This document shows, in pieces, positions 6,857 to 42,796 of a DNA stretch of 64,000 nucleotides. Position numbers and translations under genes: made by a program. The stretch is taken from positions 6,324,001 to 6,388,000 of the forward strand of contig OZ176053.1 of NCBI GenBank assembly GCA_964247055.1, given 5' to 3'. This DNA is from Paragordius varius (lineage: Eukaryota > Animalia > Nematomorpha). The notes under the pieces are model-generated. The model was not told the origin of the DNA, made no database searches, and was given only the letters and a program-made list of their open reading frames with translations. How positions within the stretch are numbered: the stretch's first letter is position 1; the number at the start of each line of letters is the position of its first letter.

Positions 6857-8476
6857 CTATCAGATGTTATAATGCTTTTATATCCTCTCAATCAAATTGG
6901 GGTATCTAAATAACCCAAACTATATTTCAGTTAAAATTTTTAGAGAAAATACTGAAAGAAACGGCTCAATTTAAATTTATGCTTCTATCCTAATATAATT
7001 ATATAAAGATGCCGAATAAAAATTTAGTTGTGAAAAAAAGTTCCATATCAAACTACTTCGACCCCATTTTTATTTTCCAACATTTTTGTGATTTTAAAAT
7101 CAAAGCTAATTTATCATTAAAATCAAACTTTGATAGCAGATGTGGGTCATTTAATTCATTTTTTTAAAATTTAGCTAATGGACACATGTCATGTTGACTA
7201 AATTTATGCCTTAAGGTTTTACCTGAAAAAAATAACATCAAGTATTTTTGAATAAACTTTTATATATTTTGGTTCATTAATGTTATAAATGTGGAAATTT
7301 TTGCCATGGTTTCAATTCATTCCATATTTTTTGAATATTTAATTTTAAAGGCCTGGGGTATCGAACTAACCCAAATTGAATCGCCAAGTGATATAAAAGA
7401 TAAAAAATTTTAATCTTGGTTTTTACAAAAAATTGTGCAAAATTCCGAAAAACATTGATACACATAAAAATTATAATGTAAATGCCTAAAGTCACTAACC
7501 CGATGCAACGCGTCTGTCACTTACAGATCACTCACTGGTGTTTGGAAGGGAGGGGTAAGGGAAGTGTACTTTATACTATTTTTGATGTTGGAAACGAAAT
7601 AAAAATGCTTATATTACTTTTTCTATAAATTCTTCATTTTTATCGCTTCAAATTTTAATGTAAAGGTTATTTATTTTCAAATTTTGGTAAATTTTTATAA
7701 AAAACGTGCAAAATCAGAGGGTATAAAAACAAATCCTTGTAAATTTTTTATATCCCGATAAAAATATATCAGGATTACAATGAACTGCGCTATAACAAAA
7801 AATGACAAAATGGCGCACATTGTGTTTTTCCAAATCTTTGATCAAAACTAAATGCTTCATTCCAAAAACATCACTACTATATATTATATATTTCTGTAAA
7901 AAGCAAAACAATTTTTTAAATATATTTTTATTTTAAGCTGTGAGTCACGAACTGAAATTTTTCATTCTTTTAAAATTGAATAGTTTTATAAACGCAAAAA
8001 TGCCGTGATTGCACGATAAAAATTTTCTATGCCATCAAAAAAATATTTTTAAAAATGCATACTTTTAAAAAAATTTTAATTTTTATTGATATTTTGTGGA
8101 AGAGTACCCCATTCTATTTTTAGGCAGGATGAAAACGGTATAAAAACCCCTTCTCTAGATAACCCAATGATGCTTAACATTTCTACGCTTCACAATTATA
8201 TTTTAAAGGGTGGTTCGTCCTGATTATGTCTAATCAAAATTGTGTTTAAAATTAAGATTCTGAAGCGAAGGAAATGTTTAGATCGAATTATATAGAAATA
8301 TATAAGCATTTTTAAACCGTTTCCATCATTACCAAAAATAGTATGAAGTACGCTTCATCAAAATATCTAAAAATTAAATTTTAAAAAGTAATATATTTAT
8401 AAGTATATATTTTTATGCCAAAATTTAGCATGTTTTATTACGATTCCGGAATTTTTGCGTTTATAACGCTGGAAAG

Positions 8477-9010
8477 AACACATTCATTTCATTTTCGATT
8501 TAAATTAGGGTAGTTGGATACCCCCAGCTTTTTTAAAATGAAATTCAATAAATATGGAATAAATTAAACAAATGGCAAAATTTTGCACTTATAAACATCA
8601 TAAACCATAATATAAAAAAATATTTATATACTTGATATTACTTATGAGGCACAATATAAAGGTAAAAATTTAGCCAGCATGACATGTGGGCATAAGCTAA
8701 ATATAAAAATAATGCAAAATATACTACTTTTTATGTTTAGATCAATATTAAATTTTATTATTATAATAAAAAAGTACAATTAATTTTGGCCTTAGAATTA
8801 AATAAACACGATATTTTGCAAAAATGTTGTAAAAAAGGCGGCGAAGTTTGATACGTTCAAAATTAAATTTTTTTAGATATTTTGACCTATTTATATATTT
8901 TTTGGGATAGAAGCATAAATTTAAATGTAAACCGTTACTTTCATTAGTTTTTTAGAAATGTCAATTTAAATATTGTCTGGGGTATTTAGCCCTAATTCGA
9001 ATCGATTAAA
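8477..9010. repeat. Dispersed ~500-bp repeat; second copy 21431-21960 and inverted fragment ~7160-7260
   Basis: Shared blocks AACACATTCATTTCA, TTTGCACTTATA, TACTTGATATTACTTAT, AAAGGTAAAA(A)TTTAG and AATTAAATAAACACG..TATTTTGCAAAAATGTTGTAAA occur in both copies. Confidence 0.65.
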
Positions 9011-10359
9011 AAACAGCTCATATTAAAAGAGTGGAAAAATTTGTGACTTTCGAAGATCGAAAAATAAAAATATTTTATTTTTTTTCCTTTTTATATCTAG
9101 TTTATGATATATTTAGTGATATTTTTTGGAAGCATTTTTTTACCAAATACAAAAATGTGCTCGCCATTTTCGGATATTAAACACCTACCACAAAAGTGTA
9201 TTACATCACGCGTAAGGGCTAAAACAAAAAGCACCATGATAATCTTGATACATATCAGAATATATATATTTCATCAGGTTATTTTTATACCCCTGGATTT
9301 TAGACGCAATGTTATTTTAATCGAAATTCTAAAGTGATAGATATGTTTAGTCTCGAATTATATAGTGTGTTTTAATTACTAACGCGCTTTTACCTTTTCC
9401 ACCATGCTTTAATAAACTTTTAGAGTATGGATTCAGATACCTCCAAAACAGGATTGATACGAACAGCTGATATTAATATAAAAAATTTGTTAGTAAATTG
9501 TAATTAAAAAGCTTTAAAGGTTATATTTTACTCATAATATACATAGCGGTGTTATATTCGCGATTTTAAAAATAAATCAGGCGAAAAAATTTGAGATGTT
9601 TTTAATTTTATTATTTAAAACAAAAAATTTTGCATCATGCGCCTAAAAGGTTAAGGAAGGCTTTTTCAAATTTGGCCCAACGATAAAAATATATTTTAAG
9701 ATAATTAAATTTTAAATGGCCCTGGGATATAAAACTACCCCAAAACTTCAAGAAATGTTGATCAACAATTTGAGATGATAAAATATTATGCATCATCAAA
9801 TTATAAAGGAAAACGTTTTTTAATATCTTAAAGTGTTTCTATATCAATTTCACCATGCTTGAAAATAATATAAAACACGCTTTACCATTTGCTATAAACC
9901 AAGTTTAAATATAGTATATAATGTATTTTAGTGATATTTTTGGGAATAAACATTTAGCTAAAAAGTTTTAATTAGTATAATATTCACAAATTTTGCCATT
10001 TTTTCGATACGAAACAATTAGCACAAAAGTGGTAGTATGCTATCAAATATCTTTAAAGCCTTAGTGAACACTGTGTTCATATTTCTTCATAATATTTGCT
10101 CTCCCGCCAATTCTGCACATAAATTTAGAAATATTACTATCACATTTTAATTAATTACAATAGCTAAAATAATTCTTTAATTATCTACTTATTTCAAGTG
10201 GACCTGAATGCTATTAAAATTTAAAGCTCTGCAATTTTCAAATTTGGTAAAAGCAAAAGTTTCTCTCTATATATCTAATCTTTGATAAAAATTTTTTTAG
10301 TGTAAATTGTTACAAATTTAAGGCTCTGAGTTAATTATCCCAAAATGTATCATTTATAA

Positions 10360-13260
10360 TAATTACATTATATGATATCACTCTTTCGAGCGGTCATATC
10401 CGTGAGAACCCTGTCTAAGGCGTCTTCGCGTTTTAGGTTCAGTTTTGCCATGTCCCTCTTAACTGTATCTATCCATCGCGTTTTAGGGCGCCCTTTTCCC
10501 CTCTTGCCTTTCACAATATAATCATCAATCTTTTGACCAATGTAATTATTATCTCTTCTTTCAACATGTCCGAACCATCTTAAACGATTTACCATCATCT
10601 TTTGCGTTACCGGTTTGATTTCTGCACTTCCTCTTTCTAGACATTCTTCACCTTGTCATTCCTCGTTACACCGCACATCAATCTAAGCATTCTCATTTCA
10701 GTAACCTCAAAGTGCCTCTCTTCTGATTTCTTTATTGCCCATGTCTCTGAGTTGTACATCATTGTTGTTTGTACAACAGCACTGTAAATCTTACCATTTA
10801 CTTTAAAGGTCAATGTTTTTGTCGCACAAAACACTTGAGATCTTTTTATAATTTGCCCAACTATTTCGAATTCTCAAATTAATATCAAGTGTTAAAGAAC
10901 AATCTGCTGCTAATATCGCTCCTAAATATTTGCATTCCTCCTGACCTTTACCACCCTTCTTCTAATTCTATTTCTCGTTTTTTCCCGCCAAAATTTATCA
11001 GTTCCGTTTTTTTTTATTAACTTTTAATCCACATCGTCGTAACACATCAATCCATTTACCCACCAATTCTTTTAATTTATGCAACTCGTCGGACAGCACT
11101 ATTAGGTCGTCTGCTTAAAGAAAATACCAGCCACCATATTGCCCCACTTCTTTTGAGATTTCGTCCATGCATATTATAAATAGTAACGGGCTGATTGAGG
11201 ACCCCTGATAGACCCCTTCGTTTATTTTAATAGGACCTGATATTCCCTGGTGTTTAATTTTGGTTTGGTGTGATTCGTACATGCTTCTTAAAATCTTTAT
11301 TTAACTTTCAGGGACCTCTTCCGTCTTAAGCTCCACCATATTGGGCTCCGAGGTGTTCTGTCAAATGCCTTTTCAATATCAATACAAATACCATGCAACT
11401 CCTTTTTCATTTCTATATGCTTCTCGATTAGACTTCTTACTGCGTGGATCGGATCAATGGTGGATTTTCCTGGAATAAAACCAAATTGATTACCCTCTAT
11501 ACTAACCATTTTTCTTATTCTTTTCTCTAGTACTTTCTCTAATAACTTCATTATATGCGACATCAATCTTATCCCTCTGTAATTATTACAATCATTAAAA
11601 TCTCCTTTACCCTTGAAAATTGGAACAGTGAAATCTCCTTCCATTCGGTGGTATCATACCTGTAATAACTACATTATTAAAAATATCCTTCAAAAATTCA
11701 ATACCTTTCTCTGACATTATTTTCCAACAGTTTATGTTAATATCGTCTGGACCTGCAGCCTTATTTATTGATATCTCTTCTAAACGAGCCTGGACTTCTT
11801 CTTTTTTTATACTTTCAATATGCGCAGATATATAATCTGGTGTTTCGGGTAAACTTGTTTCACTGACGCCCAATTCAAGGTCCTGGAAATTCTTTCCACC
11901 TTTTCATATTTTCGCTTCCTCAACGAGTAATTTGCCGTTTTTATCTTTAATAGCTGTCGCGTAAGGGGGAAAGTCCAGCTTTCTTCTGTGTCTTTGTCGA
12001 ACAATTTTAAAAACTTTGTTTAGACCTTGCTTACTGTTTAACTCTTCATATAATGATGCCGTCTTTTCTTTTTTGACCAATCTTACAAGCCTTTTAAGTT
12101 CCTTATTAATCCTTTTATATTTTTCCTTGTCTTCTGCTTGGTGGGTAAACCTCCACATTTTAAAAGCTTTTCTTTTCTCTCGCGATGAATTATTTTTTCG
12201 TCTTTCAGCCATGCCTCTCTATAAACCTGATTTCTGCCACCTTTCATTGCGCACATCTGAACCCGCCTCTCTTATTTTATTGCCACATGAGACCAAACAC
12301 TTTCTGGATCATTGTTCCTGTCTAGTATGCCTACCGTTTCTACAAATCTTTCTTTACTGTTTCTTAGGGAATCCCATTTTACCTTCGGCGCTATAAGCTT
12401 AGGCTTTTTGGCATTTATTGGTATATCTGTCATATATTTACACATAATTAAATTGTGTTGTGTGCTAATCTGCAGGTTAGGTATCACTTTTCAGTCTAAA
12501 ACAAACTTAAAGACTTTCGTGGTACTAGAATATAATCGATTTGTGACTTCTTATTTCCACTTTCGTAGGTAATTAAGTGGCTATCCCTTTTAGTAAAAAA
12601 AGTATTTGTTATAGCAAAGTTATAAGATTGGGCAAATCTAAATAAACTAGCCCCTTCTTCATTTATAACACCGTAACCTTTTCCGCCGTGAGTAGGCTTA
12701 AAACCTCTCCTATTTTGTCCCACGTGCCCATTGAAATCACCACAAAATAGAATTTCTCTGTCTTTCGTTAATGAAGTCATTTCTGCGTCTAACAAATCAT
12801 AAAATTTATCTTTCTCCAGTTAAGTTAACCCTATCTGGAAGGCATAGACGCTAAAGATAGTAAAAACCCTGTTATTTAACAATAGGTCGTCACATATAAT
12901 TCTACTGTCAGCACGTCTAACCTCAATTACTTGATTGGCAAATCTTGGACACACTATTATGACGACCCCACTGTAACCATCCGTAGAACCTGAATAAAAT
13001 ATATTATAATTACCCTCCAACGTCTTAGTATCATTTCCACGGTGTCTGGTCTCCTGAATGCACAAAAAATTTACTTTTTTTACCCTCATAGTTTCAACTA
13101 AATCATATAACTTACTTTTTAACGAACCGATATTTGTATTGGCAAAACACATTCTACAACCTTCCTTATCCCTATTGGCCCCTACCTCCGTGCAGCGACT
13201 GGCCGGGTCTGGCCTGCACGCCTTACAAAAAAACTCATAAAAAACAAAAATACAATAAAT
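10360..13260 (-). mobile_element. RTE-clade non-LTR retrotransposon (APE + RT), inactivated
   Basis: APE motifs NIGSL, LCIQETR, FCGDFNGHVG, SQIDYIL. RT motifs NYRGIRLMS, QFGFIPGKST, IDIEKAFD, GVYQGSSISPLLF, and YADD mutated to *ADD near 11110. C-terminal RLRWFGHVERR and GKRGKGRPKTRW. Multiple frameshifts and stops. A possible 5' UTR extends to ~13700. Confidence 0.93.
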
Positions 13261-15520
13261 TAGAAGAACAATATAGATGAAAATAAACACTAAAATATAT
13301 AGAACTAATATGTAAATGCAACTAAAAAAGAATCAAAAATTTTAACCAAAAAATAATAATAAAAAAACATATATAAATATATATCAATAAATAAAAATGA
13401 AGTAAAATAAAATACGCATAATAAGAATTTTGATTCGGAATATGTAATATACTTTAAATAAAACTATAAATAGATAAAATATAAGAAAAATATTATAAAG
13501 GTAATTTCGCCCATTTTTGGAATGAATGAGAACTGATAAAAGATATAATATTTGAAAATAAATAGATAACAATAGATAGTTATAATAATTGGTATAAATA
13601 ATAATTTTAATATAAAATTAATAAGAATTTTTCGTTTTTGAAGTTGCGTCAGAATGGGTCGAACGCGCGCGCGTGCAAAATAATCATTCATAAAAAGATA
13701 AAAGGTGATGACTCAATTTTTTGAGACCATTTTAGGCAGTTGACTTAGAGTTTAAATTAATAACTAAAATACATGGGATTTCGGTTAAAGTTAAAATATC
13801 AAATCCATTAAAGTCCACTCTTTCAAAAAATAATTTTGTTAAAGAAATTCTGAAATATTGTCATCATATATATATTTGATTTATAATAATACTTATAAAA
13901 CATTTGGTTAACAAATCGGAAACTCATATTTAAATATTTTATTTTAATTTTATTTTTTGAAAAATTTTATCGCATTAAATGACCTTATATCTAAGAATCA
14001 AATCTTGCATTCAAAAATTATTTTAAACGAGGTGTGAAACTATAAAACATTTTAAGAATTCTGGTATTTGTTTCTGTATTTTTTACAATTTAATTAAACA
14101 TTTTTAATATTGGAGGTTATGAAGCTTTAGGGTTAAAATACGCGTTGGTAGGAGGCCATCATACACATTTTTTTTTTCAGTGTTACAAAATGATGGTGCC
14201 CGCAATACAAAAATTATATGCGGCTGGCGGAATTTGTGAATAGTACCATTAGTTTATATCATCATGGGTTTTATGAAAATTATTTATTCGGGACTTGATT
14301 GAAAAATATGCATCATTCTTAATTTAAAAATTGTATTTTAAACGGTCTAGGAACCGTTTTTTAGAGAATAAAACCAGTTAACCGACCAAAAAACAATAAA
14401 TTCTGATTCTTTCGATTTCGTCGCCAGAACTGGATCGAAAAATGAAATCAGTTCTGACTCTCATAGTAATATTAATAATTTTATTTGAATTTTCAGTTAA
14501 CCTGTTGAATTTTTACCAAAGAAATAGACCATAAGCAAACCAATCTTTTAAAACCACGAAACTTAAAATTGAACGCTTAGTCCGTAATTGGGATTTTGAT
14601 TTGAATAAAGTGCTCGAATATAATGTGCGAATTCATAAATAATTAAAAAATTTGATTCGACCTATCCGTTTCCCGTAAATAAACTGATGGCTTAAATCAA
14701 AAAAGGGCCTTGACTATGCTTTTTTAATTGATGAAAAATATGTGTTATGTTTTCTGGAAAATAGCTTCCAAGTCCAAATTTTTTAAACAATAAGAAAAAT
14801 CCCAATTAAGTAAAATCTGATTATACATTAACGGTGATCTTTTATATTTTCACATCGTAATTTACGGAATCGATATTTTTTGTTTTAACAACAGTTAATC
14901 TCCGCGAAAATAGTCTTATACGATAATTATGCACAAAATTAGTTTAAAATGATAATTAAAATATAACTAAAATTTAACTGAAATTTAAACTAAAAATACT
15001 ATATAATATGCACACTGCAACAATAATCACAGGCTGGTTTTTGTACCTATATCTGGGCTGGAGTAAAAAATAAATTTATATGGAAAGAGGAATGATATAT
15101 TCGTGTTTTTCAATAAACTTAAAATATTTTGTAATTTGTTAAAGTATTCATGCATGGAAAACAAACAAATATATATTAGTAGTTAAAAATTTAAAAGACA
15201 TAAAAACGTTGAAAATGACAAAATTATATTGCCTAATTTTTTTAGCACCATGTGGTAATGCTCTAAATTTAATAGCGAGTTACATAAACAAAATTGAATT
15301 AAACGGATTAATTAGTATAATTTATAAGAATTATTAGCGGATATAGGATATAATTTATCATACAGATGATAGAAAATCAAAAACATTTTCTAGGGATATA
15401 TAATGCGTTTTGAACTGGGAATCTAATAACCAAGATACAAATAACCAAATTTAAACAATAATATGTTAGCATTCCTTTTTTGGCATATTTGATTATTGGT
15501 AGAAAAATTACTTGTATATC

Positions 15521-16026
15521 TACCATTTGTGCACTTAAGTTTGATCATTAAACACTGGTCAGTCCTTCAACTTTTTCAATTTACTTTCAACTTTTATAAA
15601 TCAAACCGTGAATCATCCATAACGTATTCTCTTTATTTAACCAAACTTTTAACATCAACTTTTAATCATTCAAAAACCGTATATCTTAATTAAGTTCTTA
15701 AGAAATATTTTAATTATAAGATTTTAACATATAATCCATAAATGTTTTCTGGGTAATTAATAATTTTTCGTTAAAAACATCTTTAATTGAATAATATTGT
15801 TGAATTGAAAAAAATTACGTAACAAAAAATTGGTTTTTAAACGAAAAACATAAATTTTAAATGAAAAATTTATAATAAGTCGAGAAAATTAGCTTAAAAA
15901 ATGATTTGAAATAAATAAATGCATGCAAAAGTTATGGTTAATGCAAACTAAAGTATAAGGACCCACTTGAAGTCTTCAAGGGCCAACTTGAAGTTTCCAA
16001 GGACACTCTTGAATTGCAATTGTATA
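15521..16026. mobile_element. Degenerate foldback/MITE copy with 21-bp arm repeats
   Basis: Left end TACCATTTG...; right arm AAGGACCCACTTGAAGTCTTCAAGGGCCAACTTGAAGTTTCCAAGGACACTCTTGAATTGCAATTGTATA matches the element at 20487-21170. Confidence 0.6.
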
Positions 16027-16210
16027 CCATCGCATCACCTGATAACATGGCTTTTGTTCAAATACACTCAAAAAGGATTTTAAATTTATTTATTGCTGTT
16101 AATTAAACACATTATGTACATTTATTGTATTTACATATTATGACAGTTATATCCATAAATAAATATTCTGACAATATATCATCTATGGTGGGTCTATCCA
16201 ATTAATATGG

Positions 16211-17422
16211 TTAATTATTATCTTCTTTGTAAAAAGGATTATTTTGAAGGGTCAGTGATTCTGGTGAGTTTAATGCAGGATTGTGGAAAAAATTATTTGC
16301 AAGGTTAATATTGTTATTATTATTAATATTAATTTGTTTATTACAGAGATTGTTGTATTTCATATCGACCATAGCCAATTCTATTCTAGCCTAAAAAATG
16401 GTTAATAATAAGAATAATATGTTTAATCAATGGAAAACTTATTAGTTTAAAATGCGTTAGAGAGTTATAAATGATTAAATAAAAATATTTTATTACTTAA
16501 AATAAATATTCTACTCTTTATACTTAATATTTATATAACTGTACATTAATGAACATTTTGTGTTTATAAAAGTATTTAATATAGATGTGTGACCATGCTA
16601 TATAAAGTAATATGCCAGTTTCGTACTATTATATTATTCAAAAATTATGGATAAGAAGGTCATTCATAATGTTTATTAGCAAGTGTCCGAAAACTAACTT
16701 TGTCCGCAAATAAATACAAAACTCTTCGATGATAATTAATCACTTTTTAACTAATATATGAGTAATAACTACAATCAGTCAAACATGTAAAAATTAATAT
16801 TATAACGATGTATTTTTTAGCCAAAAAATACAGAAAAAAAAATATTATTATATTTAAGATTACTAAGGCATTAAATATGAGAGATTGATAGTTACGGCAA
16901 ATTAATATGTAAAAACATACAGTAAAAAAGGGTAAGAAATATTAAAAAAAATATTTAAAAAATTATAACCTGGGCAAATAGATTTTCTTGCTGTTTTAAT
17001 AGTTCATCTTCAGGAATACCTAATTCTTCCAAACGATTTGATCCACGTTTTTTACGCCGCGAAGCTACTTTCTTTTTACAATCAGTCAATGTGTTAGATG
17101 CATGATCAATATAATCGGTAAAACCCAATTTTTCTAAGGCTAAGAAAGTTATAAAAAAGTAATTACCCAAAATAACATGTTCAGACAACAGAGTTTTCTT
17201 ATTGTTTTCAAGGCATATTTCATGAGTTGTGGTAGATACGTGCTTAATAAATTGGTTACAGCACCATAAAATAAATTCACGGGCCTCACAAGATACTCTT
17301 GTAGAAGGAATTGTTTCCTTAAAAATTTTGTTTAACACAGCTCTTGGTAAAAAAAGATTTCCTCCATCATCCTGAGAGCCCCCCGTTTCCAATTCGAAAT
17401 CTTCATATGGATCGTCACTCAT
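16211..17422 (-). CDS. DR1: Negative cofactor 2 beta (Dr1), histone-fold TBP regulator; exons 17422-17167, 17139-16970, 16390-16211
   Basis: LPRAVLNKIFKETIP..RVSCEARE..EHVIL-ALEKLGF..RRKKRGSNRLEELGIPEDELLKQQENLFAQ-AR matches Dr1/NC2-beta across its length. Confidence 0.92.
17140..17166 (-). other. 27-nt in-frame GT-AG intron (first intron of DR1)
   Basis: GTAATTACTTTTTTATAACTTTCTTAG. Removal converts EHVIL-GNYFFITFL-ALEKLGF into EHVILALEKLGF, colinear with Dr1 EHVIQALESLGF. Confidence 0.8.
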
Positions 17423-17435
17423 ATAAGATAACCAT

Positions 17436-20400
17436 ATGCAAAATATAGCGCATGATTTGAAATTCGCTAAAAATATTTTGGGGGTCCAAATGATCCCAGA
17501 ACCAATTCGAAATCAACTCTTTGACAAAGCAGCTAACCCCATTAATTATAATCAAATTCTCACAAACTTGAAGAAACATCATATTGAAATTAAAGAAAAT
17601 GATCTCTTAAAAGCTCCCGACATAAATTATCCTCATCTGAAAGGGTCTATTAAAGATCATTTTAAAAACATAGGAGAAAAGCAATCGTATTTGTATCGAA
17701 ACCTATGTTTTGATTTTAACAAATCTATTTTACCTCCTTTACCATCAGAATGGAAATTACAAGGTAAGCTTAATTATTAATATTTTAGCTGGTTGGACCC
17801 GATATTCTGAAAACACGTTTGAAAAAGTAATTGTACCGTATGAAGACGCTATGATTTTTGACGTTGAGGTATGCGTGAAAGATCCAGGATTTTTGCCAAC
17901 AATGGCCATAGCTTTAACATCCAAAGCATGGTATATTGTTTGCTTTTAATCATTAAGTAGTACTAAAATTTAAAGCCGCATCTTAGATATTTTAAACCCA
18001 TCCTACTTTTTGTTTGCTACCAAATAGATTTAAACCGTAATATTTTTAATAATATTATTATTAAAAGCGAAGATGATTATCAGATTGAGTCAAATTAAAA
18101 TAAATGATTTTTAAAGTCCAGGAACTTTTACGCTATTTAGACTAATCATTGAGAACTATCAGTTTTTGCGCCGGACGATATATTGAAACTTATTATTGCG
18201 TTTATGCTATTTTGCAGTTATTGGGGCTAAACCGATGGTCAATCAAATAAGGCTGGGCGCCATTAGTTATTTTTAATAGGCCGTATCAATCGTATTCACC
18301 AAAAAATTTAGAAAAGCTGAATAATATATTTTTGTTGCCTTAAAGGTTTTGCAGAATATAAAACCGACAAATTGCTTAGCTTGACATATACAGATAATTA
18401 TACTCGAAAGAAGTACATTAACAATTCAAATAATTTTGGGTCATAAAATCATTTTTAGGGTCGATGAGCACTACTGGCCTATATGTTTCTTAAAAAAATG
18501 AAAGCAGAGGTCCAATGTTACTTAAATAATTTACCATTTAAATGTAATTATTTAGTTTTGTTAATTAATATAAAATCAAAATATTATATTCCAATTTTAG
18601 ATTCTTTATTATATTAATAATAACTACAAACTACTTTTTATATGCAATTTAATGATACGTTTTCATAATAATTTATTAAAATAATAGTTTCAAATCAGAA
18701 ATTAGCATAAGTTTTTATAATAAATCGATACTTACACAACATTTGATAAAAGGAGATTCTTAAAAAAATTTTCCGTTACCATATATAATATTTCAAAAAA
18801 TTAGCTATTTTTTTAAATCAAAAATTAAGCTTATCATTAAAAACTTACGATACTTAAACAACATTTCAAACATATTTTGTTAAAAGCATTTGTGGCCTAT
18901 AATATTTCAAAAATTTAGGCATTTTTTAAATCACAAATTAAGCTTATCATTTAAAACTTACGATACTTAAACAACATTTCAAACATATTTTGTTTCTAAA
19001 GGTATTTGTGGTGTGGACCACAACTTTTTTCCATGTCTTGGACTTCAAGCCCATCCCTCTCAAAATTTATAAACATAAACACGGCAAAAACTTGGAATAA
19101 TGCACGAATCATTATTGGCCATAATGTTGGCTATGATAGATCATGGATAAGGGATGAATATATCTTAAAAAGTATATCAAATAGAATATTTGCAAAAAAA
19201 TCGGCTATCAAATAAATTTTAATTTAGTCGTAAAAATTATTAGTAGGGGTTTTATTAATCCTATGTTATATTATATAATTATTATTTTTTTTTATGAAAT
19301 GATAAATTATTCATTCGGTATTTTTTTATTTATTCACTTCTCTTGAAATTAATAGGGTATATATTTTTAAATTTGTTAAATTTCATTTAGGTATTGAATT
19401 TTTTCGTTGTTATAGTTAACCTCCCTAGTCCCCATTCATAATGAGTTTTCGTTATAATATACAGTGCTATCGTCTATAAACTAAGTAACTCATGCCGTTC
19501 AACTTGCACTTATCCAAAATTTAAATAACTTATTTTTTAATTTTCAAAAAGATTATAATGGAAAAATTTAGCCACATTTCCTACTATTGTAGTCATAATG
19601 GGGCGAGGGGGTCCACTGTTTAAAACAATCTTTAAATGGCGTCTATATATATCTCACTTTTTGATAGAATCAGGGACTAGGTTTATGGATACCATGTCTT
19701 TGCATTTAGCGTGTTCAGGGCTAACCCATCTCCAAAGAATATCTAAAGTTGCAATGAAACAAAACAAAAGCAATATGAATTACTCTTCAAATGAACAAGA
19801 TTATAACATCATTAATAGTTCGTCGGATCTTACAACAATGTCCCCTTACTCCATTTTCGAGGGGGATTGGGAAAGGATTGGCTCCCTCAACAGTTTAGCC
19901 GACATTCATAAACTGTATTGCGCAGCATCAACGCAAAACAAAACAAAGTTTAGTAGTAATGAATCAAATAAAGATGTGCCCTACATCGATTCAGCCATTT
20001 TAAAGGCTGATAAATTGCGGAAATCCAAGGATGACACGAAAGTGACAGGTTAATATGTGCGTATAATTTACACATATAAATTAAAAACAATTTTTTGCGA
20101 TTTTTGACCCACATTTTCAATTTGATTAAGCCTTTATCCGAAAAACATGTATTTTTTTTGCACGTTTAGGTCAATTGATTCAAGTTTCCATATATTTTTT
20201 TTTATTATTCTACTTTTAGGTCAATTTATAAATTCTTTGGACGTTTTTCTAAATGGTACCTTGAATGATGTCAGACAAAATTTTCAAATGTGTGCCAATT
20301 ATTGTGCCAAAGACTGTTTAGCAACATTTGATGTTTTTAAGGTTTCCAAAATTTTAATCAGATTAAATTTTAAAAATTTTTACAATGGAAAACATCTAGA

Positions 20401-23400
20401 TAATAGATAATATTACTAACACAAACTCGTAGAAAAAATTATAATTAGATATATTGCTTTTTAATAAAGTTATATGAAACCTTTAATATACCATTTGCAC
20501 TTCAAGAGTGTCCTTGAACACTTCAAGTTGGTCCTTAAACAGTTCAAGTTGGTCCATGAACAGTTCAAGTTGGTCCTTGAACAATTCAAGTTGGTCCTTA
20601 AAATTATAAATTTTGATTTAACCATATTTTTTGCATTTATTTTTTTATTATTTATAAACCTAATTTAATTTATTTATTATATATTTATTCTTTAAAAATT
20701 AAAAATTTTTATTGAAAAACGTTTTTTTTGTTTCAAACTATTTTTTTTCAATTTAACAAAATTATTGACTTTTAAAGTTTTTAATGAAAAATTTTGATTC
20801 ATAACCTAGAAAACTTATATTTTCATTTCGTGCTAAAATCTTATAAATATCCAAAATTTTTAAGAAATTAATAAAGATATACGGTTTCTCAAAGATTAAA
20901 AGTTGATATCGATTTAAAATTTATGTTAAATAATAGAAAATAGGTTAAAAACAATAAAATAGATGAATTAATTACGATTTGATTGATAAAAGTTAAAAAC
21001 AAAACAAAAATGTCAAAGGACCAACTTGAAATGTTCAAGGACCAACTTGAATTGTTCAAGAACCAACTTGAATTGTTCAAGGACCAACTTGAATTGTTCA
21101 AGGACCAACTTGAACTGTTCAAGGACCAACTTGAACTGTTCAAGGACACTCTTGAAGTGCAAATGGTATAAATAAAATTAATTAATAATTGGTATTAAAG
21201 AATAATTTTAAAACTAGATATTTTGGACCATAATGATCCTTTTCAATCACATAATATATTAATTTTCTGCTATAAATACCTTAATATAAAATACTAAATA
21301 AAAATCACAATAGTTAAAGCAAGAAAAATATGAAAAAAGTAACGAATTGCATTATATAGTAATAAATGGCAAAAGCGCGTATAAATGATTTTTAAAAAAT
21401 AATTAATTAATTTATTTAACACTTGGATACAACACATTCATTTCAGTCCTTCGATTCAATTGGGGTGGCTATCCCAGGCTTGTTTGAAATTAAATATTTG
21501 AAAAATATGGAAGGGATCGAAACCGTGGCCAAAGTTTGCACTTATATAACATAATAAACAGAAATATAAAAAAGGTTTAAAAAATACTTGATATTACTTA
21601 TTTAAAGGTAATATCCAAAGGTAAAATTTAGTCAAATTACCTGTGTGCATTAAAATTTAAAAATTATACAAAATAAACCCTTTCTATTTTTATCAATGTT
21701 AGATGTGATCTAAATAAAAAATTAGCTTTAGTTTTAGCTTTAAAATTAAATAAACACGTATTTTGCAAAAATGTTGTAAAATAAAAATGGCGGCGAAGGA
21801 ATTTAATATGCAACTTTATTTAAAACTAAATTTTTAAATATTTCGGCTTATTTATATAATTTTTGGAAAAAGCATTGAGACCGTTTCTTTCGGTATTTTT
21901 TTAAAAATATCAACTAAATATAGTGTATTTAGATACCCCAATTTATATCGAAGCGTTAATAAATATCCAATTTTCGGTTATATTTTTAAAACCTTTTTCA
22001 GGATGAAGAAAAAATTAAAAAAATACGCGTTTTTGCCATTTATTTTAAAGAGTAATTTTATTTACTTAATAATTTTCACACACTTTTTGCGTTTTATATA
22101 AAATAATTTATTTGTTTAATCAGGTACTGTTTCCAATGTTTTTGGAACGCTTCCCGAACCCCGTAACGTTGGGTGGTATGTTGGAAATGTCGACAGCCTA
22201 TCTCCCAACCACGAAACAAGCTTGGACCAAATTTATTAGCTCATGTGAACAAACTTATACTCAAATCGATCAAGATAATCGTATTTCTTTGGCACGTTTA
22301 GCTAAGGATGCCTGTACATTACTAACTAATGAAAAGTAATTAAGTTTTAATCAGAATAGTTGTTTGCCATTAACATCTAGATTAGTTTAACTTTAAATTA
22401 ACCGGTAAAATGCGTATTATTGAGGAATATTTTGTATTAACACATTTAAGTGAAAATTATTTTGTCATTTGATTGTCTCATGCTAATTATGAGCATAAAT
22501 AGGTTTTCTACTGCACCAACTGAATGATATAATGTTAAAGTTTATTTTAAAACTAATCCTTTTGTCTATTTATGATTCATTTTTATGCCGACCAATGAAA
22601 GTTTTTGTTAATATTTAATTTATAATATTACTTTTTTGGAAAATATTATCAAGGTATCAGTGTATATAAAATAATATTTGGACATTTTTAAATTATAAAT
22701 TGATAACCCAAATCAAATTAACCTATATATGTAAAATAGCAAACATTCAGTTTAAAAATATCCACATATTATTTTCGTAGTCCATAAACAAATTACTATT
22801 TTCTTTCTGTCTTTTTCGGGCATATAGCTACAAAAATGATCCATGGTTGTGTGATTTAGACTGGTCTGTAACAAAACTTCAATTAAATAAACGGAAAAGT
22901 AAAACAACATCACTCAACAATCACCGACAAATTAAAAACAAATTTGATTACAATTATGTGTTGAAAAAATACCAAGAACTAAAGGAGTTAATCATTAGTA
23001 TGGATATAGACCCTAAAACATTGCTTTCATTCGAAGAATTTTCACTCTTTATTGATAATAATTTTGAGGAATGGGATGGAAATTTAAGCGATTTTATCGA
23101 TACTAAAAAACAACAAAATACCTATAATTGCAAAGATGTTGATAAAAATAGCCAGAGCATATTAAGGGATGTATTAGCGACAGCTCAGTTTTTACCTAAG
23201 AATAAGCCTATTCTGGCGGGATATCCATTATGGTATATAAAATTTTTTAAATATATGAAATTTGTTTGATTAAATAATTATATATTGTGCCAAATAATTT
23301 ACTAGGTATAGGGAATTGTGTGAAAAAATGCCAAATCAACAATTGCCCAATACAAAAATAAATACTGATGGACCTCAGCTCTTAAGGCAATTGTAAATTA

Positions 23401-24068
23401 TTTTAAATATTTAGTCAATAAGTATAATGAGTTTCACATTAAATTTTAATTTTTATTTATTGGTTATTTTTTATAACATCTTGAAGCATTTTTTAAAGGT
23501 AACTGCTAAATAAAAAATACATTTCATTTTAAGGGCAATAATATTACAGGTTTTTGATTGACATGTTACATCAGAAAAATAATGAATTTTTAGTAAAAAT
23601 GTTATTAAACTAAATATAAGAAATAAAGTTTCTAAAGTAAACCATTTATTTTAAACCTTAATTTTTTTAAATTATAAAGCATTGTTACTTACGAAATGAG
23701 GAATAGAGATGTGAATTGGTAAGAATTTATTTAACATTTAACAATTGTTTGAGGATAAAATTATATGGTTTCCTTTACAATTATTATTTTTTTATGTATA
23801 ATTCATATTATTACTGTATTTAAGCAAAATTTCATTTATTGTAAGTTTTATTTAAACATAGTAATTATATATTAAAAAAGAAACGATGAAACTTGTAATG
23901 AAACACGGAAACTCGGACCAACTCTCCTTTCCTCTCAAACAAGAATTTCACCCAAACTGTTGCGTTTAACATGGAAGGGTTGGCCTTTGTATTTTCACCC
24001 AAAATATAAATGGGGCTATCTTGTGCCCGGGAATCTTAATAATATGGATAAAGGTAATTTATATCTGT

Positions 24069-24100
<32 letters not shown>

Positions 24101-25116
24101 CGCATATATATCAGTTGATTTCCTTCTTTTACCTTAAAAAACGCATAATACTAGGAACTTCTAAAAACAACGCACCTTTGAAAACTTGGAAAAAAATTTA
24201 TTTTTTATATTTATGGGCTCATTCGTAACCAACACAATAAAAAATTGAACCGTAAAAAACTTTATTTTGAATTATTTGCCCACATAGCAAGATGATATAA
24301 ATCATTTTAAAAAATATGCCTATGTCCGCTTCTATTTTTCAATCATATATTTAGATAACAAAAAACATTTACATGCAATGATACAATTGCCGAAATTTCG
24401 GGAATTCGGTGACATTGTTGAAACACCTGTAATAATTTTGATTATTTTTACCGAATGATTTTGTCATATTGATTTACGAAATTTTACAAAAGTTTAAATT
24501 TCATTAGAATGATATTGTCAATAAATCGCAATTCAACTTTCCGAATTCTGACGGACAGGTTCATTTCGCAGATAGCACGTGGGATGAGGTTATGAATTCA
24601 ACGTTTGAAGGCAATATCGATGATATTAATAAAAATTTTACCAAATTTCTCCAATACGTCAAAAAATTGGATAAATATAAAGAAGCCACTAATGGTAACT
24701 TATATGGATGAATTAATTACTTACACAAGATAAGTTTTTTTAAAATGAGGGCTCACAATTGATTTTTGTTTACCAATTAAGCGAAAAATTTAAATAATGT
24801 AAGCATTGTTTGTTGTAACTTTGAATAATTTGATTATACCATCGTTCAAACGTTTAATTTTTAAGTGTTTTTTGCTTTAAATAATAATTAACAAGATAAC
24901 AAAATTTTTATCCTTAATAATAGAATTCTTTTCGGTTTTATGATAAGTTATTTGGTCCACATTCATTTCAAATAAATATGGGGGATAAGGTAGATATGCA
25001 ATCAATACTCAAAATCATATAATTTATCTGTAAATATCCTTTCCAATTATATTTTCTCCTAATTTGGTGCTTATTATCAGTGCAAACAGCTTGAAGAAAC
25101 ATTTAAATAACTATAA

Positions 25117-25155
<39 letters not shown>

Positions 25156-28100
25156 CTAGCGTAAATCTCGTGCTGCTACGCAGCCCGAGAAAGTCCTTCG
25201 GACTTCTAAGGGGGGGGGGGGGGTGGGGGGCTATTTGAAAACAGGGACAATAAATTGATCCAGATATGTGAATTATTTCGAAACATTATTTGATAGCTAT
25301 GATCTCACAGGAAATTCAAAACGGTGCATTCATACTAATATGTTGTTTACTTGGGCGGAAAATAGATTCAAAAAATTATTTTTTGGACTTTGTTTTTTAA
25401 AAAAAATGGCATTTTACGGGGGGAGCGGGTAAAAAGAGGGCCTATATTAAAAAGGCGAGGCGAAAATGTTCGGCGCAATCGAATATAACTAAACAAAAAT
25501 TATATTTGAATGAATGGTCCAACACGTTCTCCGGAAAATTGTCTCAAATACGCGATTTTGTGGACTTCTGTTTTCAAAAAAAACGCGTTTTTTACACGGG
25601 GTGGGCCTGAACTGGGGGCCTAATTCAAAAAAAGGGCGAAGGTATTGTCGAGGCATTCATTAATGATTATATTTTTTTCATAATTGGATTCGAATGGGTC
25701 TACAGGTTTTCCGGAAACAGATCACAAAGCCAGCATTTTCTATTTTTTATAAATATATAGATTATCTATATTAGGTTATCCCAAAAATGGCGTTAAGAAT
25801 GGAAGTAATAAATTTGAAGTTTTGGAATCAATTGATAATGGATCCGGCTGTGATGATGTGGCAGGATGTTGGTATTTTCCATTACCTCATAAAAGCGGTC
25901 CAAACAATAGAGTATTTACCCCTTCTTTACATTATTTAACAATCAAAAAAAAGACAAAATGTGAAAACTGAAAAAATTTTTGTTAAAAAAAACAGACATA
26001 CTACCCTTTTTAACATTATTTATTATGAGTTATCGTTTTGAATTGCAAAATAAGAATCAGAGATGTAAATTAATAACACCCTTTATTATATAATATTTGA
26101 TAATAGTAATAATCATAAATGTTATAAAAGTCAAGATATAAAAAAGTGTGACTGTCTTAAAAAATTAGTCTTTTAGTTTTCACGTTGGTGTCATACCCAA
26201 TCCTAATTTTATGTTAAAACGAAAAATAGGTGGGTAATCCCTTAAGTAAAGACTTTATCCCCTACATGGAAGATGGAACTCTTAAAGCTTGTTCGGGTCC
26301 CTCGGCTCAAACTGTCCTTAACAATAGTAAAATTATATCGTATTGGAAAAATGCACGAACTCGAATTTTATCTCAATTAGTTGTATACGAAGATTATGAT
26401 AATAATGCTGATGATGGTGATATTAATGGTTCTAACATTGCAAGTTTACTCTACTTATATACCATATTTCTCTGTCATAGTTTTTTTATTACCTAATTAA
26501 ATAATTAACTCATATATGAATCGTATGTAATTAATATGTAAAGCTTAATGTTTAGCCATTAAAAGATCCATATATTGAAAAATTTTGGTATTCGAAACAT
26601 ACAAGTACTTTATATCCTTTTTTTCTATCACACTTTACATAATAACTGATTAACTGTGCCCAACATTTTTTTATTAGTATAAGGCAGTTTTTATTTTATA
26701 TAACAATTTTAGTACACTTTACTTAATTTATAATTAAATTATATTTTATATTAAAAATAAAATTATTTTGCATATATTAGTGCTGCCAAACGATCAAATC
26801 AGTAAAATAAAATCCCGTGATTCAAATTTCATATATGGTGCAATAGTTCCACGTTTAGTTGTTTGTGGTACCGTATCTCGAAGGGCTGTCGAACCCACAT
26901 GGTTAACTGCAAGCAATGCTAGAGTGATTATTTTAAATTTATTTTACATTTTGCGTTTGTTTTATTAAGGAAAATTCTACTGCAATCTCCCCGTGGTGAT
27001 GACTGAATCACCTTTGGTAAACTAACAACTGAGGCCAGGTTTGGATTTGCTGAAAAAATATTTATTTAACAATGAGTTTAGAAAGGGGAATGTGAAAACG
27101 AAAAACCTTAACTCACCGCATTTGACATGAATTTCAATTAAAAATTCTGCACTGTAGTTACATATTATGTAATTTATTGGAAATAAATTGTTTTGTATAA
27201 ATTAAATGCAAAAAGGCACAGGGCCAATCAATCTTATTGCATAAGGTGATTGAATATATAATAGCAAAAAAGATAGCTATTTTAACGGTAATCAAATTTT
27301 ATATGTTATGACTCTATATATTTTTAGATAATGACAGTAAAAATTGAATTTATACAGACAAAATGTAAAATCATAAATACAAATATATTTAAAACACCAC
27401 TCTACTTTTTTAAACTTGATTATTTTAGAATACTATTTATTCATTCAAATTACAAAGTATGAAATAGAGATGTAAATTGGGAACAGGATCAATTATATAT
27501 TTTACAATTTATATGGGAAACATTAATGTTAGAAAAATATAGTTGTCTTTTGAAAAAATATTTGTCTTTATATTTACGATATGTATAATTTTAATTTATC
27601 TGTATATGAGTTGATTGTCAAAATTGATCGCTCGCTTTAAAAGTAAATAAATATATAATAAATAAATTGCTAAACTTTGATTCCAAATATTTTGGTATTT
27701 ATACTCTATAAATTAATTAATTTTTCAGAAATATATAATTATGGTTGTGACAAATCAAAATGAACCAACAATAGTAATTATATCTCACCTTGATTATAAA
27801 AATATTTTAGGCCGACAGATTGGGGAGTGAGCTAAAAGCTATAATTCAATCACCTCCTGGTTATTGCTTTATTGGAGCAGATGTTGATAGCCAGGAATTA
27901 TGGATTGCTTCCATTTTGGGTGATGCAAATAATTTGGCGGCAAAAACGCATGGATCCACTCCATTAGGCTGGATGACTTTGCAAGGTTATAAGTGTTTAT
28001 GTAGAGAGTACATATATTATGTAAAAGACATTTTTCGTATTTCATTATCTTTGATTTTATAAGGATATCCTATCGTTTTGGGTTGTAAAAAGGGGAATGG

Positions 28101-30433
28101 AGATGTGGATTTGTAATACAAATTTTATATTCATATTTGTATAAAATAAATTTTGGATCATTCTATAATTTTTGAATTTCCAATAAATTTAATAGAATTT
28201 TTAATTTTCTGAATAAACTATTGTAGGGAATAAAAAGGATAAAACTGATATGCATAGTAGAACGGCCGAGCTCATCGGAACGTCTCGAGATGAAGCTAAA
28301 GTCCTTAACTATGCTCGTATATATGGGGCTGGACCTAATTTCGCTGCCAGATTAATTAGTAAATTTCAACGACTTAACAAAGAAGAGGCCTTTAAAAAGG
28401 CCAAAGAAATGTATCGAGCAACTAAGGGTAATTATTTTATTCACAGTTTTAACTATTATAACTTCAATAGCTTTTATCTAATTCTCTTTTATTTTATTTA
28501 AAATATTATTTTAGCATGTATCTAAACAGTTTAAATATCATGCCATATTTTATTGTAATTATGGATTATTGACCCAGTAGGTTAAGTTAGTCATTTAAAT
28601 TGAGATCAAATATGGTGTTTTTCTCATGTAATAGTTGGCGTAATTTTTGGTCTTTGCATTGTTTTGTAGTAGGGTACGGTGGCAAGTATTTTATAAAGGC
28701 GCTCCAACTTTTAAAAAATAAGGATTAGTTAAATTTACGCTAAAAATAAAACCCTGTTTTCCAAAAATCTGCAAAATCGATAGTTTTGTCTAATGGATGC
28801 GGAACATACGAAACCCACCCCACAATACAAATTAAAAATGAAGGAATGAAAATTAAATAGGAAATTACTTAAAAAATTCACATTAACCAACCGCTCAAAC
28901 ATTTTTCTAGGAAAATCTAATTTATTATAAATAACTTGACACCCATAAATTATATATATGTATCCGAATAGGTAAACGTGTCTCAGTTCCCATAGAAAAT
29001 TATGTATCCGATTCTTTTAGCTACAATGAACCTGTCCGTAAGTCAATGTGGAAAGATGGTTCAGAATCCGATATGTTTAACATGTTGGAAACAATCGCCA
29101 CCTCAGACAAACCAAAAACACCCTTTCTCGAATCCCGAATTTGTAGGACGCTAGAACCGGCCGCAGTTGGTTCCAATTTTATGACAAGTCGAACTAATTG
29201 GGTAGTTCAAAGTTCAGCCGTCGACTTTTTACATCTTATGTTGGTAAAATATTTAGATACCTCTCTTTTTGTTTTTAAATAAGAAGGCTGCATTGTTTAT
29301 CAACGAAAACCAATTGTTAAAAATATTTTTTGAAAGAATCCTAATATGTATTATATGTATTTCAGCAACATAAATTTTTACAGACATTATATATGTTTAT
29401 TTTAAAATGTGATTAATGACATCTATTTAAATCAATTTATTTGTCCTATTGTATCGCTCGGAAAAATTTTAACAAAGAAGCGAAAAAATATTTAACGGAC
29501 AAATTGTTTCGAAAAATATATTACTATTTATCGTCTAAAACTAATTTGTAGTAAATGTAATTATACATTGTGGGTTGTATTAGGTTTGCATGAAATGGCT
29601 CATGGATGAATATGATATTGAAGGCCGTTTTTCCATTAGCATTCATGATGAAGTGAGATATCTCGTAACAGAAAAAGATAAATACAGGGCAGCTTTAGCA
29701 TTGCAATTAACGAATTTATATACGCGGGCTTTTTTTAGTTATCAACTCGGAATATATGATTTACCCTTGGTAATTTTTTAAATAATTTGAATGGATCTCA
29801 TGAGCTTTTTACAATACGCCGTGCTTATAAACTATTAGTTTATGCTGATCTTTATGCACTTTTTTCCAAAATAAATATTCTTTTAAGTTATAATCGTTCT
29901 AAGTTAACTGTACCTTTTATGATATTTTGGGCCTACTAAAATTGAAATAATTAAATATATCCATGGGATAATTTAATTTAATATCATTAAAAAATGATTA
30001 ATAGCTAAAGGTTAATTAGAAAATTGTTGATATTCCTTATATTTTTTCCACAATTAAGATCAATATGGGAAAAGGGAGAAAGGGCTAAAGTCCACTGTAA
30101 AATTTTTCTCATTTATACTTACTATTAAATACATGTATTAGAATGTGGCCTTTTTCTCAGCCGTTGATATAGATAAATGTTTAAGGAAAGAAGTGGATAC
30201 CGATTGTGTGACACCATCTAATCAAGAAGGCTTGCTCACAAACTATGGGATTGACAAAGGTTTGCAAAATTTTTAATTCTTCTTACAGAAAATACAAAAT
30301 ATGTTATTACAAATTAAAATTTCTGATTAAATTGCTTTTACTTATATTTTAATAATTAATTCATATAGGAGAAGCCCTTAACATTTACGAGATTGTTGAT
30401 AAAACTGGGGGAACATTGTCGTTACACAAATAG
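17436..30433 (+). CDS. POLG: Mitochondrial DNA polymerase gamma catalytic subunit, ~20 exons
   Basis: Exo I FDVEV (17789-17930), Exo [10 protein letters not shown] (19002-19171), Exo [13 protein letters not shown] (20220-20341), [52 protein letters not shown], motif [13 protein letters not shown], motif [17 protein letters not shown], motif [10 protein letters not shown], and [14 protein letters not shown]. Exons join in consistent phase; stop TAG 30431-30433. Confidence 0.97.
17764..17788 (+). other. 25-nt GT-AG intron (first coding intron of POLG)
   Basis: GTAAGCTTAATTATTAATATTTTAG. Removal gives EWKLQAGWTRY, colinear with POLG WAWAEGWTRY; retention gives an in-frame TAA at 17778-17780. 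Confidence 0.85.
18726..19010 (+). repeat. Tandem duplication (~113-122-bp unit, ~2.4 copies) overlapping a POLG splice acceptor
   Basis: CGATACTTA(C/A)ACAACATTT starts at 18726, 18848 and 18961; the last unit runs into exon 3. Confidence 0.85.
20487..21170. mobile_element. Foldback-type non-autonomous DNA transposon with inverted arms of 21-bp tandem repeats (in a POLG intron)
   Basis: Terminal IR TATACCATTTGCACTTCAAGAGTGTCCTTGAAC / GTTCAAGGACACTCTTGAAGTGCAAATGGTATA. Five units on the left and seven on the right of AAGGACCAACTTGAA(C/T)TGTTC. The outer TA may be the TSD. Confidence 0.85.
24072..24100. repeat. (TA)n microsatellite
   Basis: Perfect TA run. Others at ~25123-25155, 53661-53693, ~54136-54172 and ~54590-54610. 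Confidence 0.95.
25156..25761 (-). mobile_element. Non-autonomous Helitron (in a POLG intron)
   Basis: On the minus strand A|TCTATATATTTATAAAAAATAGAAAATGCTGG...CTCGGGCTGCGTAGCAGCACGAGATTTACGCTAG|T: 5' TC, 3' CTAG, subterminal hairpin, AT insertion site, no TSD. Confidence 0.85.
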
Positions 30434-42600: not shown

Positions 42601-42796
42601 ATACTCAATAATTTGGCTTCTTTTGCTATAAATTTGTTTGAAAAAAAAAGTTTAAAGATAAAATCCTACCTAAATCGTCTTCTTTTCCATCTTTATCGTC
42701 TATACAAAATACTCCACATATTTCATATCCATTCTGCTTTAATATTTTTGTGGTATCTGCGCTAAATTTGCTTTGTCCGATAATTGCTATGCGCAT
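30647..42796 (-). CDS. ALDH1L1: 10-formyltetrahydrofolate dehydrogenase (hydrolase + carrier + ALDH domains), ~18 exons; no mitochondrial presequence seen
   Basis: [11 protein letters not shown] start; [19 protein letters not shown]; ADEGLDTGP; carrier domain [16 protein letters not shown]; [13 protein letters not shown]; GFTGSTDVG; LELGGKSP; catalytic [10 protein letters not shown]; EESFGP; [15 protein letters not shown]; ends VKTVTIEY* at 30647. Confidence 0.96.
32150..32790 (+). mobile_element. Degraded Penelope-like retroelement remnant in an ALDH1L1 intron
   Basis: Frameshifted fragments LKHI/FHQNG*, VIFKCSR*SVYI*G (GIY-YIG-like), and [23 protein letters not shown], matching the RLIREAI...LNxDxG terminus of Penelope endonucleases. 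Confidence 0.6.
42626..42669 (-). other. 44-nt first intron of ALDH1L1
   Basis: GTAGGATTTT...AAATTTATAG. Removal gives [17 protein letters not shown], colinear with DGKADPLGLEAEKDGVP. Confidence 0.85.

Follow-up and report, generated by a model that had tools for sequence, protein, structure and literature searches.

A candidate POLG presequence exon antisense to DR1 at a head-to-head gene junction in the hairworm Paragordius varius

How can two divergent genes be expressed when their start codons nearly touch, and how does one of them still encode a mitochondrial presequence? This question is raised by DR1 (NC2-beta) and POLG, the pol-gamma catalytic subunit, in a stretch of 64,000 nucleotides of Paragordius varius DNA (assembly GCA_964247055.1, contig OZ176053.1, positions 6,324,001 to 6,388,000), which we call the window and number from its first base. 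A preliminary description of this DNA had placed the two ATGs head-to-head with a gap of 13 bp and had noted a TAA at 17424–17426, ahead of the POLG ATG and in its frame. On rechecking the sequence, the DR1 ATG on the minus strand (CAT, 17420–17422), the spacer (17423–17435) and the POLG ATG (17436–17438) were all found at these positions, and the TAA was seen as well. In bidirectional pairs, by definition, the genes are arranged head-to-head and their starts are separated by less than 1 kb; with 13 bp, DR1/POLG falls within this definition. Divergent pairs are common, but a spacing of 13 bp in an animal with kilobase-long introns leaves no room for two conventional promoters and leaders. We favour, with our confidence evenly divided, the reading that the POLG N-terminus comes from an upstream exon antisense to DR1 (17177–17231) that is spliced to position 17449. 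If this exon is real, the 13-bp gap reflects a mis-called POLG start and not a true distance between starts.

The identity of both genes was established by domain and homology searches. The minus-strand open reading frame (ORF) at 16955–17422 carries the Pfam histone fold CBFD_NFYB_HMF (PF00808; E=8.4e-14, residues 24–84) and aligns with human NC2-beta (1jfi_B) over residues 18–151 at E=6e-31, whereas NF-YB chains matched it more weakly, at only about 1e-5 to 1e-6. The similarity to NC2-beta extends past the histone fold and includes the C-terminal LGIPE.ELL..QQ.LFA segment. With its histone fold and its preference for NC2-beta over NF-YB, the ORF is, as judged by homology, a member of the DR1/NC2-beta family. 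On the plus strand, the pol-gamma exonuclease domain PF18136 matches POLG exons 1, 3 and 4, and tblastn with three POLG homologues resulted in about 16 collinear exon blocks from 17439 to 30261, covering homologue residues ~23–1081. The gene thus combines a pol-gamma-specific exonuclease domain with a family-A polymerase domain, and by this domain content it is the POLG catalytic subunit.

The POLG N-terminus is short when read from ATG 17436. In this model the conserved block V17-Q18-M19 starts at residue 17 and is preceded by 16 residues. In eight homologues with complete N-termini the corresponding IQM-type block starts at residue 37–74, after 36–73 acid-poor, basic residues, which bears out the earlier remark that there is too little room for a presequence. 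The homologues were collected in an exhaustive search with POLG exon 4, which gave 20 weak relatives, the named ones being from a monogenean, a schistosomatid, a mite, a millipede and a springtail; no hairworm POLG was found among these 20 matches. Residue 13 of the ATG-17436 model aligns with residue ~71 of human POLG and with residue 15 of a yeast Mip1 construct. Composition points in the same direction. The first 20 residues contain two K/R, one D and no S/T. Those of the homologues contain 2–5 K/R, and seven of the eight lack acidic residues there. By these measures the N-terminus from ATG 17436 is not presequence-like. Only three codons separate the TAA at 17424–17426 from the ATG. An extension of the same exon by read-through of the TAA was rejected, as a second in-frame stop (TGA, 17373–17375) lies upstream and the frame holds no ATG.

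To search for an upstream exon, we listed all ATG-GT-AG joins within 400 nt that lead into the POLG frame without a stop. Of these, only the join from ATG 17177 adds more than six residues to POLG. The candidate exon that this ATG opens, here called exon 0, comprises 18 codons and encodes a basic peptide with no acidic residue, and its phase-1 donor at 17232 fits the acceptor TATAG/C at 17448/17449. It lies codon-for-codon antisense to the conserved HEICLENNKKTLLSEH part of the DR1 histone fold. Splice sites were scored with a weight matrix built from 12 real introns of the window, including the 27-nt intron of DR1, and leave-one-out scores of these introns served as the reference range. The donor at 17232 scored 4.3 (87th percentile of all GT sites) and the acceptor at 17448/17449 scored 2.9 (77th percentile of all AG sites), both inside the range of real introns. 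The AG dinucleotides near the POLG start end at 17427 and 17448, and the former scored -0.3 (47th percentile), which is average to poor. The phase fit and the splice scores are direct observations, as are the gene identities, the coordinates and the frames. Among three alternatives between which it did not choose, the preliminary description had named an upstream targeting exon within or beyond DR1, spliced to one of these two AGs. One half of this proposal gained substance in the form of a specific, phase-compatible candidate at 17177–17231 joined to AG 17448, but AG 17427 makes a poor acceptor and nothing convincing was detected beyond DR1: scans of 9000–17420 for distant basic, acid-free ATG exons with a good phase-1 donor found none above background. 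A 35-nt microintron from ATG 17407 (GT 17414, AG 17448) was also considered and rejected; it yields only MDP-HDL... and its donor is in the 19th percentile.

How unusual is such an exon? We counted ORFs of at least 15 codons with no D/E, at least two K/R and a phase-1 GT[AG] donor. They occur at 0.36 per kb per strand, which corresponds to P ~0.09 for finding one within 260 nt, and candidate exon 0 is the only ORF of its class between 16000 and 17436. At its start, the peptide is similar to the N-termini of POLG from a springtail, Orchesella (MFRQRAIF), and from a mite, Dinothrombium (MFSKKSF). In N-terminal similarity it takes 1st, 5th and 14th place among the window's 675 ATG-ORFs when the first 8, 12 and 18 residues are compared, respectively. 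The DR1 codons that would read as stops on the opposite strand (TTA, CTA and TCA) were used at 0 of 4 positions in the overlap (three Leu, one Ser), and elsewhere in the exon TTA was used for 3 of 6 Leu. This avoidance of antisense stops is weak evidence (p ~0.15).

With the antisense exon, DR1 and POLG would form a collapsed divergent pair with interdigitating 5′ ends. DR1 would be translated from ATG 17422 with a leader of at most ~12 nt and a TATA element 25 nt upstream. POLG would not start at ATG 17436; its transcription would begin about 260 nt upstream, inside DR1 on the opposite strand, directed by a TATA box in the 27-nt DR1 intron, and translation would start at ATG 17177. The basic, acid-free peptide of 18 residues encoded by exon 0 would serve as the mitochondrial presequence. 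The 217-nt candidate intron (17232–17448) spans the DR1 start codon and the out-of-frame ATG 17407, and its removal would take the DR1 start region, the spacer, ATG 17436 and ATG 17407 out of the POLG mRNA. In the spliced product the conserved block would be located at residue 31, near the 37–45 of most homologues, and about 55 nt would be coding on both strands, for the DR1 histone fold on one and for the POLG presequence on the other. Exon use, the transcription starts and the targeting function are thus what the model predicts.

Several points weigh against the antisense exon. All statistics on the candidate were designed after it had been seen. The in-frame ATG 17436 is positioned three codons past a stop and directly ahead of the homologous IAH, a coincidence of ~0.12 if this ATG is intronic. 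The candidate peptide has a single Arg. Much of its F/L/I/V content follows automatically from the Lys/Glu/Asn codons of DR1 on the other strand, and its initial MF is dictated by the Glu-His conserved in DR1. Between phyla, presequences seldom show conservation, and the likeness to other POLG N-termini may be luck. Finally, TATA-like strings are common at 27% GC, and TATAAAAAAG, the putative TATA box of POLG, is just the pyrimidine tract of the DR1 intron in reverse.

Next, we asked how long the 5′ leaders of the two genes can be. Plus-strand ATGs are present upstream of POLG at 17407, out of frame, and farther away at 17222 and 17177. On the minus strand, out-of-frame ATGs at 17435 and 17453 are located 13 and 31 nt before the DR1 ATG, and the ORFs from both overlap this ATG and end 5 nt past it. 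Given these out-of-frame upstream ATGs and ordinary scanning, the DR1 leader would be limited to at most 12 nt and an unspliced POLG leader to at most 28 nt. Long 5′ untranslated regions deep in the partner's exon are therefore unlikely. The earlier suggestion that both untranslated regions lie inside the partner's coding exon is accordingly narrowed: the upstream ATGs speak against long leaders, and only leaders within these two limits fit it. The TISU element SAASATGGCGGC was not found at the start codons, whose contexts are CCATATGCAA and TTATATGAGT.

A TATA-motif scan detected TATA-like elements 25–27 nt before three ATGs of the window. TATAWWW occurs at -30 to -23 before only 6.4% of all window ATGs, and ATG 17436 has no TATA element in this interval. 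Elements at 25–27 nt would imply that transcription begins at the start codon or right beside it, although a sample of three ATGs is far too small for this spacing to carry weight.

The window contains a second divergent pair. In it, 76 bp separate the minus-strand ATG of an ALDH1L-type formyl-tetrahydrofolate dehydrogenase gene (42796) from the plus-strand ATG at 42873, the first that is in frame with a TMCO4/DUF726 gene; this suggests that the 13-bp spacing is not a chance oddity of the DR1/POLG locus. The spacer of this second pair contains two small plus-strand upstream ORFs (ATG 42815 and 42830). Outside hairworms, the POLG gene of the monogenean Cichlidogyrus casuarinus (contig region 9078–11646) has a divergent neighbour 356 bp away without a recorded Pfam domain. 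As this neighbour shows no histone-fold match, the DR1-POLG pairing is not shared there. Neither POLG exon 1 nor the DR1 ORF found a match in word searches, and none of the searches brought up a protein or transcript of P. varius itself. The DR1/POLG junction itself is flanked by an exact 13-nt direct repeat, CCAATTCGAAATC, at 17389–17401 and 17502–17514, whose copies start 113 nt apart. The first copy falls within DR1 codons 8–12 (antisense) and the second within the conserved POLG block (PIRNQ); the chance expectation for such a 13-nt match in 500 nt is ~0.02.

A different account of the locus takes ATG 17436 as the real POLG start. The two genes would then share an ultra-compact bidirectional core, their mRNAs would be near-leaderless, with zero to a few bases ahead of the ATG, and POLG would have lost a classical cleavable presequence and be imported through a short amphipathic N-terminus, through internal signals or bound to a partner. 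We consider this possible but rather doubtful. ATG 17436 is in frame, right after a stop and right before residues that align with mite POLG (IAH.KF.KN), and the second tight pair with its 76-bp spacing provides a precedent within the window. Since upstream ATGs force the DR1 leader to at most 12 nt, near-leaderless mRNAs would exist here anyway. The N-terminus has a moderate hydrophobic moment of 0.41–0.44 (11 residues), and eukaryotic ribosomes translate leaderless and very short-leader mRNAs (PMC5124965, PMC2518114). What speaks against a start at ATG 17436 is that all eight homologues with complete N-termini carry at least 36 residues before the block, that its first 20 residues include an Asp, only two K/R and no S/T, and that no properly spaced TATA element lies ahead of it.

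The POLG 5′ end could also originate from farther away, either from an exon beyond DR1, in which case DR1 would sit within a long first intron, or from a trans-spliced leader, joined in each case at AG 17427 or 17448. Nematodes, the sister phylum, trans-splice; POLG introns reach 1.8 kb, and AG 17448 is an acceptor of average quality. However, candidates for a distant exon are no more numerous than the background rate predicts, and the best of them either lie antisense within a long interspersed nuclear element (LINE) at a distance of 7 kb or suffer from poor donors. A spliced leader (SL) would be unable to provide a presequence. For DR1, no AG is present within 44 nt of the ATG, and a leader from the nearest AG would hold two upstream ATGs. 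Rfam found neither an SL RNA nor any other RNA family in the window, although 64 kb without an SL gene says little. Taken together, an origin of this kind appears unlikely. Least probable by far is an assembly artefact, in which a collapse or mis-join would have placed the starts of two unrelated genes side by side. The direct repeat around the junction would be in line with such an event, but both frames are intact to their ATGs, homology on each side stops only a few codons short of the junction, and a similar architecture is found at 42796/42873 in the same window.

We compared the locus with known systems of compact gene starts. Bidirectional promoter pairs of animals include antisense overlaps of first exons, e.g. 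TP53/WRAP53. In mammalian divergent pairs there are usually 100–1000 bp between the transcription starts, and the overlaps consist of untranslated exons. DR1 and POLG resemble such pairs in being head-to-head, of housekeeping type and equipped with a very short shared control region; under the favoured antisense exon their first exons would also overlap on opposite strands, as in pairs of the TP53/WRAP53 type. They differ from the mammalian pairs in that their start codons are 13 bp apart and that the proposed overlap of ~55 nt would be coding on both strands. Very short-leader or leaderless mRNAs of eukaryotes are described from Giardia and similar compact protists and from mammalian TISU genes (PMC5124965, PMC2518114). 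The predicted DR1 leader of at most 12 nt and the TATA-like elements 25–27 nt before three window ATGs are reminiscent of these genes. In contrast to the compact protists, the genome here is that of an animal and has introns of kilobase length; the TISU consensus SAASATGGCGGC was not found, and the transcription starts are predicted ones. As for the presequences of POLG and Mip1, candidate exon 0 would give POLG back a basic N-terminal extension free of acidic residues, with the first conserved block at a normal distance. This extension is nevertheless unusually short and arginine-poor, shows no obvious R-2/R-3 cleavage motif and would reside on its own mini-exon antisense to another gene.

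The alternatives differ in what they would mean. If the two start codons are real, hairworms would represent an animal lineage that relies on near-leaderless mRNAs, and POLG would enter mitochondria without a classical presequence. The latter would be of interest in view of the unusual abundance of hairpins in hairworm mitochondrial DNA (PMC6649704). Use of the antisense exon, on the other hand, would mean that the two strands of one stretch of DNA encode different proteins, which is rare in animals, and that automatic annotation of this genome would truncate proteins from tight gene pairs at the N-terminus. A wider reading can be built on this exon, in which the POLG presequence is antisense in DR1, its TATA box is in the DR1 microintron and the TATA element of DR1 doubles as the acceptor tract of POLG; hairworm genes would carry TATA elements ~26 nt before the ATG and produce near-leaderless mRNAs. 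We put forward this combination tentatively and regard it, taken jointly, as somewhat doubtful. If true, it would explain why divergent start codons abut, and some mitochondrial genes that seem to lack a presequence would hide antisense mini-exons in tight pairs. The locus thus contributes a specific and testable proposal, a presequence mini-exon of POLG antisense to a DR1 coding exon.

The coordinates of the features are collected in Table 1. The 27-nt intron of DR1 was called on the basis of nine extra residues, GNYFFITFL, which are missing from human NC2-beta in the alignment, and DR1 exon 2 has a possible additional donor at 16969. For POLG, frame-compatible GT-AG solutions put the introns between 25 nt and ~1.8 kb, and removing the 25-nt microintron restores KLQ-A-GWTRY. 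Spliceosomal introns of 25, 27 and 44 nt (17764–17788, 17140–17166 and 42626–42669) are found beside introns of 0.2–1.8 kb in the same genes (POLG, DR1 and ALDH1L). The 1.8-kb POLG intron, between 20342 and 22123, contains tandem repeats of ~21 nt at 20470–21175, which the ORF translations display as recurring NLNCSRT / QFKLVLE units.

Table 1. Positions of the DR1 and POLG features, of the putative elements around their junction and of the TATA-like elements in the window
Feature	Position	Strand	Basis or remark
DR1/NC2-beta exon 1	17167–17422	-	codons 1–85 plus one base; ORF, Pfam, NC2-beta alignment
DR1 microintron, 27 nt, in-frame, GTAATT...CTTAG	17140–17166	-	GT/AG boundaries read in the sequence
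DR1 exon 2	16955–17139	-	open to stop at 16955–16957; NC2-beta alignment continues through LGIPEDELLKQQENLFAQ
Spacer ATAAGATAACCAT, 13 nt	17423–17435		holds in-frame TAA 17424–17426 and a minus-strand out-of-frame ATG (A at 17435)
Candidate POLG exon 0 from ATG 17177, MFRQQSFLIVFKAYFMSC plus one base	17177–17231	+	predicted; antisense to DR1 codons 64–82
Candidate POLG intron 0, 217 nt, phase 1, GTAGAT...TATAG	17232–17448	+	predicted; splice-site scores
Out-of-frame upstream ORF, 13 codons	17407–17448	+	its ATG 17407 is 29 nt before ATG 17436, which the ORF overlaps
POLG exon 1 from ATG 17436	17436–17763	+	alignment with Dinothrombium POLG begins at residue 23 of the latter, base 17439
POLG microintron, 25 nt, phase 1, GTAAGC...TTTAG	17764–17788	+	only frame-compatible GT-AG solution
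POLG exon 2	17789–17930	+	Exo I motif FDVEVC
Remaining POLG exons (~14)	19002–30261	+	introns of 171–1791 nt; tblastn tiling and splice solutions
TATA-like element TATAAAAAAG, 27 nt before ATG 17177, inside the DR1 microintron	17150–17159	+	TATA-motif scan
TATA-like element TATATTTT, 25 nt before the DR1 ATG	17440–17447	-	same bases form the AAAATATA tract of candidate acceptor 17448
TATA-like element TATAAAAG, 26 nt before ATG 6856 of an SR-rich ORF	6878–6885 (approximate)	-	TATA-motif scan

The surroundings of the two gene pairs include remnants of mobile elements. A remnant of a retrotransposon without long terminal repeats (non-LTR) occupies 10368–13290 on the minus strand, 4 kb upstream of the DR1 3′ end, and consists of endonuclease-like and reverse-transcriptase-like ORFs with a C-terminal RWFGHVERR...GRPKTRW motif. 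The minus strand also carries a hAT-type transposase remnant at 46601–48203 (hAT dimerisation domain, E=7e-5) and an intron-less ORF of 408 residues at 55412–56638, which has no Pfam match and whose many hydrophobic segments give it the look of a seven-helix receptor. The GC content of the window is 24–35%, mostly ~27%, and that of the Gordionus assembly is 26.93% (10.1101/2023.06.26.546503). A TMCO4-like exon of 411 residues is clearly best matched by a Gordionus protein, with 488 bits and 52% identity across 99% of its length, ahead of the next named relatives at ~297 bits.

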